From contig NC_135759.1 in assembly GCF_052425735.1 (NCBI RefSeq), forward strand, positions 6,634,001 to 6,698,000: a DNA stretch of 64,000 bases, in the 5' to 3' direction. The position numbers and the translations under genes were made by a program. The number at the start of each line of letters is the position of its first letter. Positions within the stretch are counted from its first letter, which is position 1. Shown piece by piece: positions 41,797 through 50,835 of this stretch. This stretch comes from Oculina patagonica. Lineage: Eukaryota. Under the pieces are notes generated by a model. That model searched no databases. It was not told the DNA's origin and was given only the letters and a program-made list of their open reading frames with translations.

Positions 41797-42404
41797 AACT
41801 TTATTTTCACACGATAATAATAAAAGCTAAAAGCTTGTGGGGTCGTGTATTTAAATTTAAGATTAAAATTACAAATAAAATATCTAAAATTACAATTCTT
41901 ATATTTACAGTAAAATTATCATTTGGTTATTGCGATATTATTATTTAAAAAGAAAATGTATATTTAAATATTGTAATAAGTAATGTCTTGTAATTAGCAT
42001 CGTAAGTAGTGTATGTATTTGTTAAGTAAGTAGTGTTCTTTGTGTGTCAATAAACAAATAAAAAAAAATTATCATTTAATTAATTATTAACTAGAACTGT
42101 TACTATATTAGATGATTAAAATAAACTAACTAAAAGCTAATTATATATAAAATCACAGTGTCTGTGGCGGGTTGTTGAAGCCGACAGGGCGTTAAAATTA
42201 AAATCTTTAAAATATGCTCTATTGACAACATGCTTTTGTAGCAAGTAGAACGAGAGGGACTGGGCCCAACCCCAAGTGACATATTATTATGGGATCGGAA
42301 AATCCCACGTGTTGGCGAAAAACCTAGCGAGGATCGATGAGAAAACGTGTTGTTATTGTAGTTTTGAAGTAGTACCTGAGCGAGATTGAGTAAAGTGTAA
42401 CATT

Positions 42405-42421
42405 TGGTGACCCCGACGTGA
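42405..42421 (+). promoter_or_regulatory. Primer-binding site complementary to tRNA-Trp
   Basis: TGGTGACCCCGACGTGA is complementary to the eukaryotic tRNA-Trp 3' end ...TCACGTCGGGGTCACCA. Confidence 0.85.
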
Positions 42422-42436
42422 CAAAGAAGCCATCGA

Positions 42437-43747
42437 AATGTCGAAAGTCGTCGAAGAGATTCAGATAGAGGTGAGAACAGCAATTTGTCAGCTTAGCGAA
42501 GCGAGTCTTCGAGAAATATGTGCGGGGCTACACATCGAAGTAAAAGAGACGGCGAGGAACTTGGAACTGAGGCATTAACGAATCTCAGAGAATCAATTAA
42601 AGAGAAGAAACCTGCAACAAAGGACGCGAAGAGTGAACAAGAGAGTGGTGTGAAAACCGAACAGGAGGATCGGAAGTCTGCCATCAAGTCAAGTACAAAC
42701 ACAGTTACGCCTAGAAGAAACCACAGCGACCCCACCGTTCAGGAAGGAATTTAAAATATCGGGACAGATTGGAGATTCACGTCAGAAAGACCGCTTGAGC
42801 TTTACCAGTTTGGCTCACCAAATAAACGCTGGATTAAAACGGGGCTATAAAGAAGAAGAAATTGTCGAGACCGTTATTCGAGCCATCAATCCAGGCCTTA
42901 GATTGAGAAGCTACTTGGAAGGTAGGCCCGATTTAGAACTTGCCAGATTACGTAAAATACTCCGGTCACATTATCAAGAAAGGGGGGCTACGGAAATGTA
43001 TCAACTGCTCAGTTCGGCAGTACAGGAGAGACCCCTCAGGACTTTCTTGTTCGCCACCTTGATCTAAAGCAGAAGGTACTGTTTGCATCTCAAGAAGCAG
43101 GATCTGATTTGAAGTATGACCCAAAGCTGGTACAGTGCATGTTTCTGCATTCATTATTAACTGGGTTACGGAATGATAGCATTAAAATGGAGATAAAACC
43201 CTGCTTGCAAAACACCCAAGTAGAAGATGAAGAACTTTTTGAGAAATTGAATACAGCAGTTAGTAATGAAACAGAAAGAATGCAGAAGCTTGGTTCCCGT
43301 CATGACCAACCCACAAATCGGACCCCCACACAGCTTGTAGCTCAATTGGCCACCCATGATGACAGCCATGCCTCAGTTGAAGGTAAAACCCCAGAAAAGC
43401 CACCAAAAGTTAACCTTCTTACTGAAGTTAGAGAGTTGAAAGCTGAACTGGCTGCTATCCGGGAGGGTATGGAACAACAAAGCCGCGCTAGCCCCAAGCC
43501 GCAGTACAACCCTGTAGAGCAAGGGAGGATTCGCCCTAGAGGATGCTGGAATTGTGAGAGACAAGGAAGGGGCTTTCGTTGCAACCATTGTTTCAACTGT
43601 GGTGATGCTGGCCACTTCAGTTACCAATGCCAAAGGTCAAGCCGAAGGGGCTATAACTCAGCAAACCCCCAGGGAAACAGACCAGGGTTGCCCCCACGGG
43701 ACAAGGAGCAGCCCGCCAGATTCATGAGCAGTCCCAACAATGCATGA
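42437..43747 (+). pseudogene. gag: Gypsy gag (frameshifted) with CCHC knuckle
   Basis: Broken across ORFs 42518, 42795 and 43109. CWNC...CNH and CFNCGDAGHFSYQC zinc knuckle. Confidence 0.85.
43672..43714 (+). promoter_or_regulatory. -1 programmed ribosomal frameshift signal
   Basis: Slippery G GGA AAC in the gag frame, 6-nt spacer, stem GGGTTGC/GCAGCCC. Confidence 0.75.
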
Positions 43748-43750
43748 ACT

Positions 43751-46700
43751 GTGGAAAAAGGAGGGGATTGGGCCCATCAATACTTGCGATGCTCACAATG
43801 CCATACTAGCCACTATTGTTCAAAAGTTTGTCAGAGGGAATATTGGGAGAAGCATAAGAAACTATGTCAAGCCATCAGTGAAGTTGAACTGAGGGAAAGG
43901 GGGTCTAAGGCAGGTGTTGAAACACTGAAAACCTCGTTCCCTTCACACCTAACTCCAAGACAACGTTCTAAACCCACCAAACTAGTGGGAAGAAAATGTG
44001 TAGTTTCCTGCTTGGTCCAAGGGAGAAAAGTGGATGCCCTGTGGGATACTGGAGCTCAAGTTTGTGTTGTGTCAAAGTATTGGAAAGAAATCAATCTACC
44101 AGATGAGCCAGTAAGAGACATAAGTGAGTTACTGGGGGAAGATGAAAAAAATCTCCAGGCCGTGAATGGTACGAAAATTGCATATGATGGGTGGATTGAG
44201 GTAGAGTTCCAGTTGGCTGGGGAGGACGGGTACTCGGAGCCATTGACAGTACCCATACTAATAGGAAATGAAGATAATCAGGAGTATCCCATCATTGGCT
44301 TTAACGTCATTGAAGAGGTCATTAAGTGGAGTAGTAGCCCCAACAAAACCAGCCTATTTCCCCGAATAGTGAATGACTCGTTCCCATCTGTGAAAGAGGG
44401 CGAAGCGAGAGCGCTGGTTAATTTCATCCAAAGTATGGATGACGAGGCTGACACTAGCATGCTCAGAGTTGGCAGACAAGACATAAGTGTCCCACCAGGA
44501 GAGACTGTGAGAGTCAAATGTCAAGTACACTTTGGACTATTGGAAGAAGATTTGCCTGTTGTGTTTGAGCCCAAAGAAGAAGGGACGTGGCCTGAGGGGC
44601 TAGAAGTTAAAGGCTGTCTTCACCGAATTCCCCCCGGGTCGTCGAGCCGAATGTATGTTCCAGTATGCAACAACACTGAGCGAGAGATGACCTTACGTAG
44701 GCGGACAGAACTTGGCACTATACAGTTAGTGCAATCCGTCACGCCACTGCCAGTCGAAGCTGAACAGAAACAAGAGGAAGAGGAAGGTGAAACTCGGAGT
44801 GAGGCAACCAGTTATGAGTGGGGACCAAGTCAGCCAGAACAAGGTGAAGCACAGTGGACTCCCCCAGTTGATTTGAGCCATTTGTCAAGTGAGCAACAGG
44901 TGATTGTCAAGGGAATGTTGAGGGAAGAGTCCGGGGCCTTCGCTACAGATGATGGTGACATTGGATGTGCGGAACACTTGAAATTAGAAATCAACCTGAG
45001 AGATGACGTCCCAGTAAAAAAAACATACAATTCAATTCCAAAGCCCTTGTACGAAGAGGTAAAGTCACACTTGCAGGATATGTTCAATCGTGGTTGGATA
45101 AGCGACTCAAAGTCACCCTACTCTTCCCCAGTGGTGTGTGTGAGAAAAAAAGATGGCAGTCTAAGACTATGTGTCGACTATAGGCAGTTAAACAGCAAAA
45201 CTGAGGATGACCGCCAGCCCATCCCTCGCATCCAAGACATCCTGAATAGTCTCAGTGGGAACACTTACTTCTCAGTGTTAGACCAAGGAAAGGCATATCA
45301 CCAGGGATTTGTAGCAGAAGAACACCGACATCTAACGGCGTTCATCACCCCTTGGGGTTTATACCAGTGGAACCGCATCCCTTTTGGCCTTAAAAATGCA
45401 CCGGCGGCTTACCAGAGGTACATGGAGAAATGCCTGGAGGGTCTTCGTGATGAAATATGTATTCCATATCTTGATGATGTCCTATTGTACAGTAGAACAT
45501 TTTCTGAGCATGTAGACAATGTGCAGCAGGTACTTAGATGTTTGCAGGAGTATGGTATCAAGCTAAAGCCAAAGAAATGTGAGTTGTTTAAGCCCCGTGT
45601 TCGTTACTTAGGCAGAATAGTCTCAGCGGATGGCTACACGATGGACTCAGCGGACGTTGCAGCAGTGGCAGCCCTTAAGGAAACTAAACCAGGAACTGTT
45701 GGTGAATTGCGCAAACTCCTGGGTTTCATTAGCTATTACCGCCAATATATTCGCGACTTCTCCAGATTAGCCAAACCCCTGTATGACCTACTCTCAGTCA
45801 GAGAATGCAGTGAACAGCCCAGCAGAGCTAAAGGACAGAAAGAGCACCCCAAGTGGAAGTTGCCGACATCGAAAGGACAATTGTCGTCAAATCACAAAAT
45901 TCTGTGTAATGAAAGACACCAAGAGCGACTAAGCTTCTTAATTGAACTTTTAATGCAGCCAGGGGTAATGGCTTACCCTGACTTTGAACGACCATTCGTA
46001 CTGCACACGGATGCCTCAAGTGAAGGGCTTGGGGCGGTACTCTACCAAGAACAAGGGGGAAAGTTGAGAGTTGTTTGCTATGGCTCAAGGACATTGACGC
46101 CCGCGGAACGGAACTATCACTTGCACTCAGGAAAATTAGAATTCTTGGCCCTAAAGTGGGAAATTACTGAAAAATTCAGGGATTACTTATTCTATGCCCC
46201 ATCCTTCGTCGTTTTCACAGACAATAACCCGTTAACGTATGTGATATCATCAGCAAAGTTGAATGCCACGGGGCATCGCTGGGTAGCCGAGTTAGCAGAC
46301 TATAACTTTACAATCAAGTACCGACCGGGCAAGACTAATGTTGATGCGGATGTTCTGTCAAAAATTCCATTGGACATAGACAAATATATGAGAGATTGTA
46401 CAGAAGAAATACCCAAAGATGTCCTTGCAGCAACCGTGGAAGCAGTTAGGGAACAGGCAAAAGGCACAATCCCATGGGTTATGGCAATTGCCGCAGACAT
46501 GACAACTCCTGAACCCACGTTAAAGGACCTTAACCTGAAACCATTCAGCCCTAGTGAACTCAAGGAGGCGCAGCACTCGGATAGTGCTATACGCCGCGTG
46601 CTTTACTACAAGACACATGGGATCAAACCGGGTGGTGGCCAACTGAAGAATGAACCCCATGGAGTTGCCAAGCTTATGAGAGAATGGAAGAAACTAGAAG

Positions 46701-48283
46701 TTGACGAACATGGTATACTGCGTCGAAGAACAAGCTCTAAGATACAATTAGTCCTGCCACACATCTTCATCCCAATGGTACTAAAAGAACTGCACACAGA
46801 GATGGGACACCTTGGGGTGGAGAGAGTCGCAGAACTTGCAAGGTCCCACTTCTACTGGCCACATATGTACCGTGACATAGAGCATTTTGTGACACAACGT
46901 TGCAGATGTATCAAACAGAAGAAACCAAACACAGTCACGAAAGCACCTATGATGCATCTGATGAAATCAGCACCATTTGAAGTGGTTTCCATTGATTTCT
47001 TGCATCTAGACAAGAGCAAAGGTGGATATGAATATGTACTACTGATTGTTGACAACGTTACCAAATATGCCCAAGCCTATGCAACGCGTAATAAGACGGC
47101 CCGCACTGCTGCTGAGAAGATCTACAATGAGTTTATCCCGAGATTCGGTTTCCCAGCACAAATACACCATGACCAAGGTGGCGAGTTTGAAAATAAATTG
47201 CTCCACAACCTCGAACGTCTAAGTGGAGTTGCTAGCTCGCGAACCACTCCATACCACCCACAAGGAAACGGCCAGATAGAACGCATGAACCACACCTTAC
47301 TCTCGATGCTAAGGACCCTCCCGGAGGAAAAGAAATCGAACTGGAAATATTCTTTAAACAAGCTCATACATGCGTACAACTGTACAAGACACGAGACCAC
47401 TGGGTACTCAACATTTTACCTGATGTTTGGCCGTTCCCCACAATTACCGGTTGATTTGCTGTTTGACCTGGGCAACGACCCGCAACAGGCTGATTACCAG
47501 GATTATGTAAAGACGTGGCAAGCAGATATGAGATGGGCATATGACCTAGCATCTAGGAAGACCCAGAACTCGTCAGCCAGAAGTAAAGTGTATTACGACA
47601 GGAAGGCTTCCGCTGCAGTCCTACTTCCCGGCGACCGCGTACTTGTTAGAAACCTTTCAGAAAGGGGGGGACCTGGAAAGCTCCGTTCACACTGGGAACA
47701 GCAAATTTTCGTAGTTGAGGAACGCATATCTGATAGTCCAGTCTATCGAGTAAAGCCCGAACATGGCCGTTGGAAACAACGAGTGTTACACCGTAACTTG
47801 CTACTTCCTTGTGATGCTTTACCACTGCCTAAACCAACGAGAGCCTCATCCAAGACCACCCAACCAAGATCCAGAGTACTACCCCAGCCTGAAGATACTG
47901 GAGAGAGTTCCGATGATGAGTATGAGATGGACACACCGTCCTCTCCAGTCACCCATGCAGCCTTTCCTGCGGAAGTAGACACTGCACCTATGGACCCACA
48001 GGACCACTGTGATAATGAAGTTTGTGCCGATATGTCAGATACCAGGGACCAACCTGACCTACGAGTGGATACTGATGGCTCATCAGTGCCAAATTCATCC
48101 GGTCTAGATGTGACCGATATATCCCCTCAGGAAAGTGACAATTCAGATTCAGAGGAACACCTAGAGGGAGCTACGCGACCTAGAAGGGAGACACGACCCC
48201 CTCAGATTCTGACCTACAGCCAGATGGGGGTGCTCGAGTACCAACGTTTAAACCCAGTAGTGAACGCAATTCAATGCCCTTAG
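43751..48283 (+). CDS. pol: Gypsy Pol: MYND finger, aspartic protease, RT, RNase H, integrase
   Basis: [58 protein letters not shown]; 1510 aa open. Confidence 0.96.
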
Positions 48284-50092
48284 GTGATACTTCCCTACCA
48301 AGTCATGGGCAACTGGCTTGTACCTCACTGCACCCCGCACATCCCATTTGTCTCACAGCTGCAGTTTATGCCACAGCCCATATGGACAAACCAGTACTGA
48401 ACACTCTTGTAGTCACAACTGATTGCTTCGAGAATTAACCATGGACAAGCAGACCTGTTGCACGCCTTTTGTGACCAAAATCATAAGCAAACTTTGTGTT
48501 GGATATTACCTCTAGTTACAAACTGGTTAAAGACAAAACCTGCGGATCATGGAACTGCCGCAATAAGTATTCAGTTTGAGACATGATGAGAATTGACGCT
48601 CCCCCTAACTATTTCTCTGTTTTTGGTTTTGTATTTACTGTAATGATGTCGGGACGACATTTCTGTTGGAGGGGGAGTGTGTAGCAAGTAGAACGAGAGA
48701 GACTGGGCCCAGCCCCAAGTGACATATTATTATGGGATCGGAAAATCCCACGTGTTGGCGAAAAACCTAGCGAGAATCGATGAGAAAACGTGTTGTTATT
48801 GTAGTTTTGAAGTAGTTCCTGAGCGAGATTGAGTAAAGTGTAACACTTCCTTAACTCTAAAAAACTTGAAAAACTCTTCTGTTGATTGTGGTATTTAACA
48901 ATATTCCAAAGTACAGATCCCTTGTATCTGAGTGAATCATTCACGAATCGCGAGTGTATCAGTGTATCTATTGGTTTACAAACTAGATCCAGTTAAATTT
49001 ATGAAGAGAGAGTTCAACACTAAACAAGAATACAAATATTTCTAAAGAATATTATATATCTAAACAAGAATGCAAATATTTCGCCGTCGTCGTTCAAGCT
49101 TTTCAAAATACGCAGAATTTGATCAAGTTGTTGTTTTGCAGAGAAAGGTCAACTAATACACTAATTAAGATCTAAAACGCACGTGCAGAGTTATTTTTCT
49201 TCCAATTGAACCTTTTGTTTACTCCCGAAGTTTGCTTTAAGCTTCCTACTGTTTGACCAACATGTAAAAGACAGAGTATATTAACAGTTTAATTATCGAC
49301 CAATTTGCGTTCGATTATTTCTCTTGACCATCTAGAAGTTAGCTTTTCAGCCAGCATCACATCTAGTCCCAATAGAGATAGTCTAATCGGCGCGTGTCGC
49401 GGGTCAACAAAATTGTCGCGGGTCCACAAAATTGTCACGGGTCCGAAAAAAAATATATTTTTGTTTATAGTTTTTCTTAAGTTCAATACCTCATTAAAGA
49501 TAATAGAATAACGATAACAAGTGCTTGAAAGTAGGTAGACGAAAAATTGAACTTTACTTTTGCTTTCTATCTTTTGAACAGCATATACTATATCAACGTT
49601 CAAGATAATAAAATAATACTAGTTGTACCTATCGGTAAGTGCCAACGAGCGAAATACTCATGTTTGTTCATAAGAACAGATATTGAATGGTTTTTGATAG
49701 AACTATATTTGAAATGACCAAAATATTGTAAATTTGTATTTTAGGTAATATGCGAAAAAAGTGCTATTTCTCTGGTGTTCATAAATGACATTGGCTTGAT
49801 AGCCTGCGTAGCAGGCGCCGTATTCTCGCGATCGCGCACTCTTTTAAGACTTTTTTTACACTAAAAAACGTACACAGATGTCTGCTACGCAGGCTACGGG
49901 TTTGACAGATTGATAACTCCTGACAAATCTTTAAATTCTTTTTAACGTTAAAATGTCACAAAATGTAGGCAATAAATGAGGTTTAATCACTGTTTTTTAA
50001 ATACAACACGCGATGGTATAAATGTTTCCGTCCACAAAAGGGAACTTCTTATAAATCAAATCCCAAAATCAAAACTGCTAAGATGCTTTTTT

Positions 50093-50835
50093 AAGCACTA
50101 AAAGAAAGCATTTACCCGACTTCAGCATTCTCAGAAGTCAAGAAAACTCTATGTGAAGTCAACAGTCCGCTTTTGATTTTCATGTCTCACTTCGATCGTA
50201 AATCAAAGGACTCCAAAGTCGAAAGATTATTTCATTATTTTGAAGACCTTGATGTTCCTTTTTTCGGCGGTCGAATATTCTGTAGGGTATTCTCTTTCGA
50301 TTTATAATTCTCTAAAGGTGTATTTATCGGTAAAGGGATGAATGACCACATTGAAAATAATTTTCAGTAATCAGAGACAGTCATGCACGGGTCAGATTTC
50401 AGTCTCAAATGCGAAGTGTGACTTTCTTGTGTGTATGACATGCAGTAATTTTAGTGAGCGTCGCTTTGTATTGATGTTATTCCTACGCGGAGCGAAAATG
50501 CGTGCCAAATAAAATATAAACGGTATTTGATTTGGAATAAATCATCGGTCAAACAATTACTATAAACACAAGCACTAAAAGAAAGCATTTACCCGACTTC
50601 AGCATTCTCAGAAGTCAAGAAAACTCTATTTGAAGTCAACAGTCCGCTTTTGATTTTCATGTCTTACTTCGATCGTAAATCAAAGGACTCCAAAGTCGAA
50701 AGATTATTTCATCACTTTGAAGACCTTGATGTTCCTTTTTTCGGCGGTCTAATATTCTGTAGGGTATTCTCTTTCGATTTATAATTCCCTAAAGGTGTAT
50801 TTATCGGTAAAGGGATGAATGACCACATTGAAAAT
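50093..50835. repeat. ~265-bp direct duplication (50093-50358 / 50570-50835)
   Basis: AAGCACTAAAAGAAAGCATTTACCCGAC...GACCACATTGAAAAT occurs twice with few differences. Confidence 0.9.

Follow-up and report, generated by a model that had tools for sequence, protein, structure and literature searches.

A probable MYND zinc finger as the N-terminal domain of Pol in a coral Ty3/Gypsy retrotransposon and its relatives from cnidarians to vertebrates

Analysis of a 64,000-nucleotide stretch of the genome of the coral Oculina patagonica (assembly GCF_052425735.1, contig NC_135759.1, positions 6,634,001 to 6,698,000 of the forward strand; this whole stretch is referred to as the window) revealed a 6.6-kb Ty3/Gypsy long terminal repeat (LTR) retrotransposon on the + strand (window 42237-48845). 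Its Pol polyprotein probably opens with a genuine MYND zinc finger of the ETO/DEAF-1 type, representing the N-terminal ("transframe") domain. As judged from comparison with related elements, this finger is maintained by selection across a large metazoan clade. Within the window, the finger is distributed over the following segments:

43741-43752, + strand: first cysteine pair of the MYND finger (CMNC, encoded by TGC ATG AAC TGT), in the -1 frame relative to gag
43755-43762, + strand: run with one extra base in comparison to all 13 sister copies, as a result of which the remainder of the finger and Pol are read in the gag frame
43775-43867, + strand: remaining six MYND ligands (C-x2-C-x5-C-x3-C-x7-H-x3-C), in the gag frame in the window copy; Pfam PF01753, profile 9-39; the last Cys is TGT 43865-43867

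The layout of the finger was compared with 13 sister copies from the same genome, being 93-98% identical and aligned to the window copy. A single frame, -1 to gag, contains the complete finger (C-x2-C-x12-C-x2-C-x5-C-x3-C-x7-H-x3-C) in 11 of these copies, and approximately nine of the 11 retain all eight zinc ligands. Defects within the finger are scattered over the sister set (loss of the first Cys, loss of the ligand His, a stop inside the finger and a 12-bp deletion, one case each), as is expected of decaying copies. The first-pass annotation of this DNA had presented the full MYND spacing as one motif. All ligands are present indeed, but the window copy splits the finger over two frames by a one-base insertion, and its six-ligand part comes right after the gag stop TGA, in the gag frame. 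Furthermore, three changes relative to the sisters break the gag frame: 49 bp are deleted after 42552, one base is added at 42714, and 7 bp are deleted after 43027. With its finger split by one extra base and gag broken three times, the window copy is dead. Three sister copies have an open gag frame of 463 aa, and there is no copy among the 13 with all of its frames intact. The presumably native layout of the finger was derived from the other copies, the window copy being broken.

At window 43745-43750, the 1510-aa Pol frame follows gag in the gag frame past a single TGA and mimics a readthrough layout foreign to the family, an appearance caused by the extra base at ~43755-43762. In P0133 (2011 aa, cluster of P0001), a copy of this family in the databases, gag, MYND finger and pol are found in one frame with the join a few codons past the slip site, reflecting either an indel copy or a gene-model artefact.

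The assignment to the MYND family was evaluated on the levels of profile, sequence and fold. A search with the Pfam zf-MYND profile (PF01753), as had been suggested in the first-pass annotation, gave 37.4 bits for the partial finger of the window (E 2.6e-9, profile 9-39) and 40.6 bits for a sister copy, there covering the full profile (E 2.7e-10, 1-39 of 39), in comparison to a curated cut-off of 22.7 bits. Other families of the genome reached 45.8 and 40.8 bits. Among solved structures, the best sequence matches were DEAF-1 (4a24, 2jw6) and ETO/CBFA2T1 (2dj8, 2od1, 2odd) with E values of 2e-5 to 6e-5, followed by SMYD3. The AlphaFold2 model of the first 230 Pol residues comprises the finger (predicted local distance difference test, pLDDT, 89-97), a helix continuing from the finger, a disordered linker and a retropepsin domain. 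Using this two-domain model (finger plus protease), Foldseek returned proteases only, the modelled protease resembling those of feline immunodeficiency virus, equine infectious anaemia virus and human immunodeficiency virus (HIV). With the finger modelled alone (pLDDT 84.7), the first ~46 Foldseek matches in the PDB were all MYND domains, with template-modelling (TM) scores of 0.6-0.74 and root mean square deviations of 0.7-2.4 A; the predicted finger has the beta-beta-alpha cross-brace fold of MYND domains in this model. These results bear out the earlier placement of a MYND finger at 43741-43867, directly 5' of the protease, where the expected residues are found. A look-up in the Protein Atlas pointed to a cnidarian MYND cluster (at 0.85), which is regarded as a lead only.

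Extension of this analysis toward relatives was performed with the Pol of a sister copy as query against 5.8 billion proteins, resulting in 677 relatives at E<1e-10. The finger was tallied in the best 120 of these 677 (49-60% identical, ~1500 aa). The intact eight-ligand pattern is present in 65 of the best 120, located ~80 residues 5' of the protease D-T/S-G; ~15 more begin at an internal Met within the finger, and ~80 have at least its C-terminal part. Named finger-bearing members originate from corals, from teleosts, i.e., salmonids (Oncorhynchus, Salmo, Coregonus), a killifish (Nothobranchius), a characiform (Metynnis) and a sparid (Acanthopagrus), and from the frog Hyperolius. The captured host-interaction module assumed in the first-pass annotation is, with its occurrence in a large metazoan Gypsy clade (corals, teleosts, frog), not a recent or private one. 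Within the best 120, the finger is truly absent in only two small groups, P0090/P0079/P0108, which are single-ORF (open reading frame) Gag-Pol proteins including Oreochromis, and P0116/P0062/P0087. Mapping of the finger on the tree of the relatives, also proposed at the outset, placed both MYND-less groups next to MYND-bearing rows of the Pol tree, which is unrooted; on the basis of this adjacency, an ancestral presence with a few losses appears to be the simplest reading.

Within the finger, the conservation is concentrated at few positions. Considering the non-ligand residues of 58 distinct fingers, a Tyr is kept in 100%, a Gln in 98%, a Ser in 90%, a Trp in 88% and a His in 86%, and the entropy at most other positions is above 3 bits. 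Over 44 sequences, the finger reaches a mean pairwise identity of 0.45, or 0.32 if its ligands are disregarded, and the protease one of 0.46, compared with 0.15-0.18 for the helix tail and linker. MYND is present and constrained in the sisters as well as in divergent families, and the objection foreseen in the first-pass annotation, that it might be absent or unconstrained in sister copies, does not apply. One further finger-bearing relative is P0297 (RUA05110.1), a Gypsy Pol of 1576 aa belonging to the cluster of P0094. It is encoded on a contig of 6.9 kb and carries the database title 'MAG: hypothetical protein [Gammaproteobacteria bacterium]'. This contig almost certainly represents a eukaryotic retrotransposon misbinned into a bacterial metagenome-assembled genome (MAG).

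Ahead of the finger, sequence comparison gives good support to a -1 frameshift signal with a putative H-type pseudoknot, consisting of the following elements:

43672-43678, + strand: slippery heptamer G_GGA_AAC in the gag frame (within CAG GGA AAC), candidate -1 frameshift site; from comparison with relatives
43685-43714, + strand: predicted stem 1 of the stimulator, 43685-43691 pairing with 43708-43714, with the loop GGGAC at 43698-43702; from folding
43731-43735, + strand: predicted 3' arm of pseudoknot stem 2 (GUCCC), pairing with the loop GGGAC at 43698-43702

The -1 frame opens ~20 nt 5' of the heptamer. The cassette was compared in nine distinct sequences of approximately five element families, a small sample in which all members come from one genome. 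Although the MYND-plus-protease region of the other families is just 44-51% identical to that of the window, the layout is the same. At the equivalent place, the nine sequences carry GGGAAAC, GGGAAAT or GTTAAAC, the last in one family; as G_UUA_AAC, this variant is the heptamer of equine arteritis virus. The geometry is fixed throughout, with a spacer of 6-7 nt, a stem of 6-9 bp and a constant distance of 26 nt between the heptamer start and the loop motif G(G/A)GAC. The complement of this motif, GUC(C/U)C, follows 53-59 nt from the heptamer start, in every case with 5 nt between its end and the codon for the first Cys of the finger, the stretch between slip site and finger being almost wholly taken up by the frameshift signal.

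Pairing was assessed in a six-sequence alignment (A1), in which 98.5% of the cells pair, compared with 23-43% when the partners are slid. Compensatory double changes were found at four pairs. In stem 1, three of the six pairs counted show such changes; in stem 2, all five pairs are kept in every sequence, including a double change to GAGAC/GUCUC in one family. A pairing of the slippery GGG with a downstream CCC, suggested by RNAalifold, was judged to be an artefact, and the loop-to-downstream pseudoknot was examined instead. The signal resembles the H-type pseudoknot -1 signals of retroviruses, luteoviruses and arteriviruses in its X_XXY_YYZ heptamer, its 6-7 nt spacer and a stem with the loop pairing downstream. 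Unlike in those, the putative stem 2 comprises 5 bp, is formed 25-30 nt downstream and overlaps the codons just before the finger. Frameshifting presumably takes place at this site. Since the finger lies downstream of the -1 slippery site, it would be made only in Gag-Pol, a view already taken in the first-pass annotation and strengthened by heptamer, stem and pseudoknot being shared by all nine sequences.

Signs of activity come from other copies. Further MYND-bearing families of the genome include no fewer than nine copies that score identically and have open frames of 1546 aa. Contigs of 4.5-6.5 kb, ~94% like the window element, were found in coral RNA libraries, namely in four libraries (two of them poly-A) belonging to three studies. 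They reach from gag over the finger to pol and are free of the four defects of the window copy, including the extra base at 43762. DNA runs labelled as three different organisms and a coral metagenome each contained about half of the 31-mers of the element; therefore, the element family appears to be nearly the same in several samples or species.

MYND domains serve as modules for protein docking. Because of this property, and because the peptide-contact residues are among the best-kept non-ligand positions, we propose a putative docking of Gag-Pol, or of the protease precursor, on a proline-motif protein, most likely a host factor. The MYND fingers of ETO and DEAF-1 hold the PPPLI motif of SMRT/N-CoR via three residues, namely a Ser or Thr behind the third Cys, a Gln behind the sixth Cys and, four residues further on, a Trp (Thr516/Ser673, Gln529 and Trp533 in ETO/DEAF-1; PMC3555993). 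In the alignment, these contact residues correspond to the conserved Ser, Gln and Trp of the element finger, the respective positions being occupied by Ser/Thr in 67%, Gln in 98% and Trp in 88% of the element fingers. The MYND domains of ETO (CBFA2T1) and DEAF-1 are thereby its closest counterparts, sharing the best sequence matches, the same predicted fold and the PPPLI contacts. They differ in the spacing of the first and second Cys pair, with a loop of 11-12 residues in the element compared with seven, and the element finger stands in the context of a retrotransposon polyprotein.

In working copies, the ribosome would translate gag and slip back one base at G_GGA_AAC, aided by the downstream stem and pseudoknot. 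After ~20 residues, it would produce the MYND finger, a short helix and a flexible linker, and then protease, reverse transcriptase (RT), RNase H and integrase. The finger would be carried only by the Gag-Pol molecules, which are in the minority; being a frameshift-only part of a minority of the structural molecules, it would suit a role in recruitment or regulation, not a bulk structural one. It may then dock Gag-Pol, or the protease precursor released from Gag-Pol by cleavage, onto a partner with a short proline-rich motif. This partner would most probably be a host factor, such as a co-repressor or a co-chaperone, encountered in particle assembly or in subsequent steps. We rank such general host-factor docking before a chromatin tether, a p6*-like protease regulator and a counter-defence decoy, in this order.

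Several points weigh against this interpretation. Frameshifting, zinc binding and peptide binding are all deduced from the sequences. The contigs in the RNA libraries show presence there and are not proof of transcription. The two MYND-less subclades lost the finger or never had one, so it is dispensable in some lineages. In respect to conservation, the sequence set was picked for a full finger, and the invariance of the ligands is consequently in part due to the selection of sequences. Moreover, a binding partner was not found in this analysis, in which the Gag tail and the C-terminal Pol motif were examined as ligands within the element. The Gag tail, made only without frameshift, reads PGLPP in this family, a match to PxLxP, but this is not conserved in other families, where RRLPPRD, QRLSRRD and RRLHQRD are found; the conservation at this site is better explained by RNA structure. 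The C-terminal Pol motif (RPxRxRRPPxxxTYDxLGxP), lying ~50 residues before the Pol end, is present in most relatives, finger-bearing and MYND-less alike, and does not co-vary with the finger.

More specific functions were considered as alternatives to general host-factor docking. As an integration-site tether, a role raised in the first-pass annotation next to anti-silencing, the finger would bind a chromatin co-repressor of the N-CoR/SMRT or NuRD type and steer the pre-integration complex, comparable to the chromodomains in chromoviruses. The chromodomain of chromoviruses is the textbook retroelement accessory domain. In favour of the tether, no Chromo family was among the Pfam matches on the 1510-aa Pol. 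The nearest solved relatives also fit, these being ETO and DEAF-1, the MYND of which binds N-CoR/SMRT, and ETO2 bound to GATAD2A of NuRD. However, the finger is located beside the protease, at the Pol end opposite the integrase, and behind a flexible linker which in the model resembles a cleavage region. This weakens the tether because processing would leave the finger unattached to the integrase, and we consider this function rather unlikely. The chromoviruses nevertheless provide the nearest parallel, being a Ty3/Gypsy lineage with a lasting host-type chromatin-regulator interaction module in Pol that is kept over long evolution. The position of the module differs, in their case being the C-terminus of the integrase and here, for MYND, the N-terminus of Pol by the protease.

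The position itself is reminiscent of the transframe peptide (TFP-p6*) of HIV-1, sharing the slot just 5' of the retropepsin, past the -1 frameshift and in Gag-Pol only. Whereas p6* is a short disordered peptide, this slot of the element holds a predicted folded, zinc-binding and conserved domain. A p6*-like regulator, in which finger and helix time the dimerisation and activation of the protease, perhaps via self-association, would be in line with the finger occupying the retroviral transframe slot from slip site to protease, and with the long helix which continues from the finger in the model. The DEAF-1 MYND dimerises in vitro with a Kd of 0.5 uM (PMC3555993). The residues kept in the element, however, belong to the peptide-binding face and not to the DEAF-1 dimer face, and helix tail and linker show poor conservation (0.15-0.18 identity), making this an unlikely function. 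A predicted complex of two finger copies with zinc scored 0.00, which is evidence neither way on self-association.

Contacts between MYND fingers and proline motifs are also found at the virus-host interface. BS69/ZMYND11 binds via its MYND the PxLxP motifs of adenovirus E1A and Epstein-Barr virus EBNA2 (PMC3555993; see also PMC4742278). A contact of this kind is only proposed for the element, and the roles are exchanged: in those cases the finger belongs to the host and the motif to the virus, whereas in the present case it is the mobile element that possesses the finger. Instead of aiding assembly, the finger might act as a weapon of the element, i.e., as a mimic of a host MYND domain on Gag-Pol that hijacks or blocks a protein with a proline motif, this protein being the partner of a host complex for silencing, co-repression or innate immunity. 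We assign only a low probability to this idea; if true, it would account for the retention of the finger in the whole clade, from cnidarians to vertebrates. For corals, the target could be a partner of STAND-TPR-beta-helix-MYND proteins.

As a plain decoy, the finger would mimic the MYND of a host silencing or immune complex, either of the TDRD1/Vreteno/Veneno type of the piRNA pathway or of the coral STAND-TPR-MYND type, and soak up its partner. MYND fingers are present in piRNA-pathway Tudor proteins (PMC12526068; see also PMC6411831 and PMC9002060), and the same coral has an intronless NB-ARC/NACHT-TPR-beta-helix-MYND family. Nevertheless, the finger sequence is nearest to ETO/DEAF-1 and not to the MYND fingers of Tudor proteins, and a sub-stoichiometric Gag-Pol domain is ill-suited as a decoy, so we regard this function as still less probable than the preceding ones. 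A functionless passenger (a piece of a host exon), a chance cysteine pattern or an extension of the Gag zinc knuckles is very improbable: two subclades manage without the finger and the window copy is broken, but the finger is conserved like the protease across relatives 49-60% identical, its ligands and the residues of the binding face are retained with the other positions varying freely, and profile, sequence and fold matches are all MYND-specific.

The coral family just mentioned was encountered as a set of weak MYND matches with open frames of ~1400 aa. Considered as retroelements, these were rejected as being host STAND/NLR-like genes. The frames (L059:61-3603, L060:79-3738 and L061:6-3752, located on G000:C11 at ~0.87 Mb and 7.03 Mb and on C5 at 15.02 Mb) are intronless and measure up to ~1400 aa in the genome and 1181-1249 aa within the analysed loci. 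They comprise NB-ARC/NACHT, DUF7779, TPR and right-handed beta-helix domains and a C-terminal MYND finger, an arrangement that suggests a STAND/NLR-like family of the coral in which MYND comes last. Within C11:850-895 kb, three or more STAND-MYND copies are located. An 822-aa RT/RNase H frame of a different retroelement (L061:4672-7137) adjoins one STAND-MYND gene.

Regarding novelty, no description of a MYND finger in an LTR-retrotransposon polyprotein was found in the full-text literature, the coverage of which excludes most subscription journals and Repbase Reports, leaving the absence unproven. The first-pass annotation had named an undescribed system; this stands insofar as no describing paper was found, while the architecture is already tagged automatically and visible in the Pfam (PF01753) annotation of many database proteins. 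Accessory domains reveal how retroelements handle their hosts, and the finger would add a second, apparently undescribed module beside the chromodomain: a putative docking finger of co-repressor type in a frameshift-only slot by the protease, kept from corals to fish and frog. As a 60-residue domain which is separately expressible, it offers a concrete handle for a partner search. In parallel, the heptamer-stem-pseudoknot cassette represents a compact candidate for an animal frameshift signal. The finger furthermore accounts for isolated 'MYND' or 'Gypsy integrase-like' gene calls in coral and fish genomes.

The remaining features of the element are as follows:

42237-42402, + strand: 5' LTR, 166 bp, TG...CA, a 97.6% identical direct repeat with 48680-48845
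42405-42420, + strand: primer-binding site TGGTGACCCCGACGTG, 2 nt past the LTR, complementary to the 3' end of tRNA-Trp(CCA)
42439-43747, + strand: gag, broken in the window copy, stop TGA at 43745-43747; from translation
~43586-43633, + strand: CCHC zinc knuckle of gag (Pfam zf-CCHC)
43955-44332, + strand: retropepsin-type protease, active-site D-T-G at 44045-44053
45140-45616, + strand: reverse transcriptase (RVT_1; Pfam E 2.8e-34)
45980-46303, + strand: RNase H (Pfam RT_RNaseH, E 1.7e-27)
46757-47260, + strand: integrase (Pfam), H2C2 zinc domain at 46757-46924 and catalytic core (rve) at 46967-47260
48173-48229, + strand: conserved C-terminal Pol motif of the RPxRxRRPPxxxTYDxLGxP type; from comparison of relatives
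48668-48677, + strand: polypurine tract GGAGGGGGAG, immediately 5' of the 3' LTR
48680-48845, + strand: 3' LTR, direct-repeat partner of 42237-42402

With its LTRs, tRNA primer site, polypurine tract, CCHC gag and Pol domain order, the element fits Ty3/Gypsy (Metaviridae). Pol is a 1510-aa open frame with the Pfam order protease, RT, RNase H and integrase. The complement of TGGTGACCCCGACGTG was found at the 3' end of tRNA-Trp genes (genome contig G000:C7). The flanks outside the LTRs read CTTT and CTTC, matching at three of four positions and possibly representing an imperfect 4-bp target-site duplication. Approximately 1.2 kb 3' of the element, two direct repeats of 266 nt (50093-50358 and 50570-50835) are located 477 nt apart, being 98% identical.

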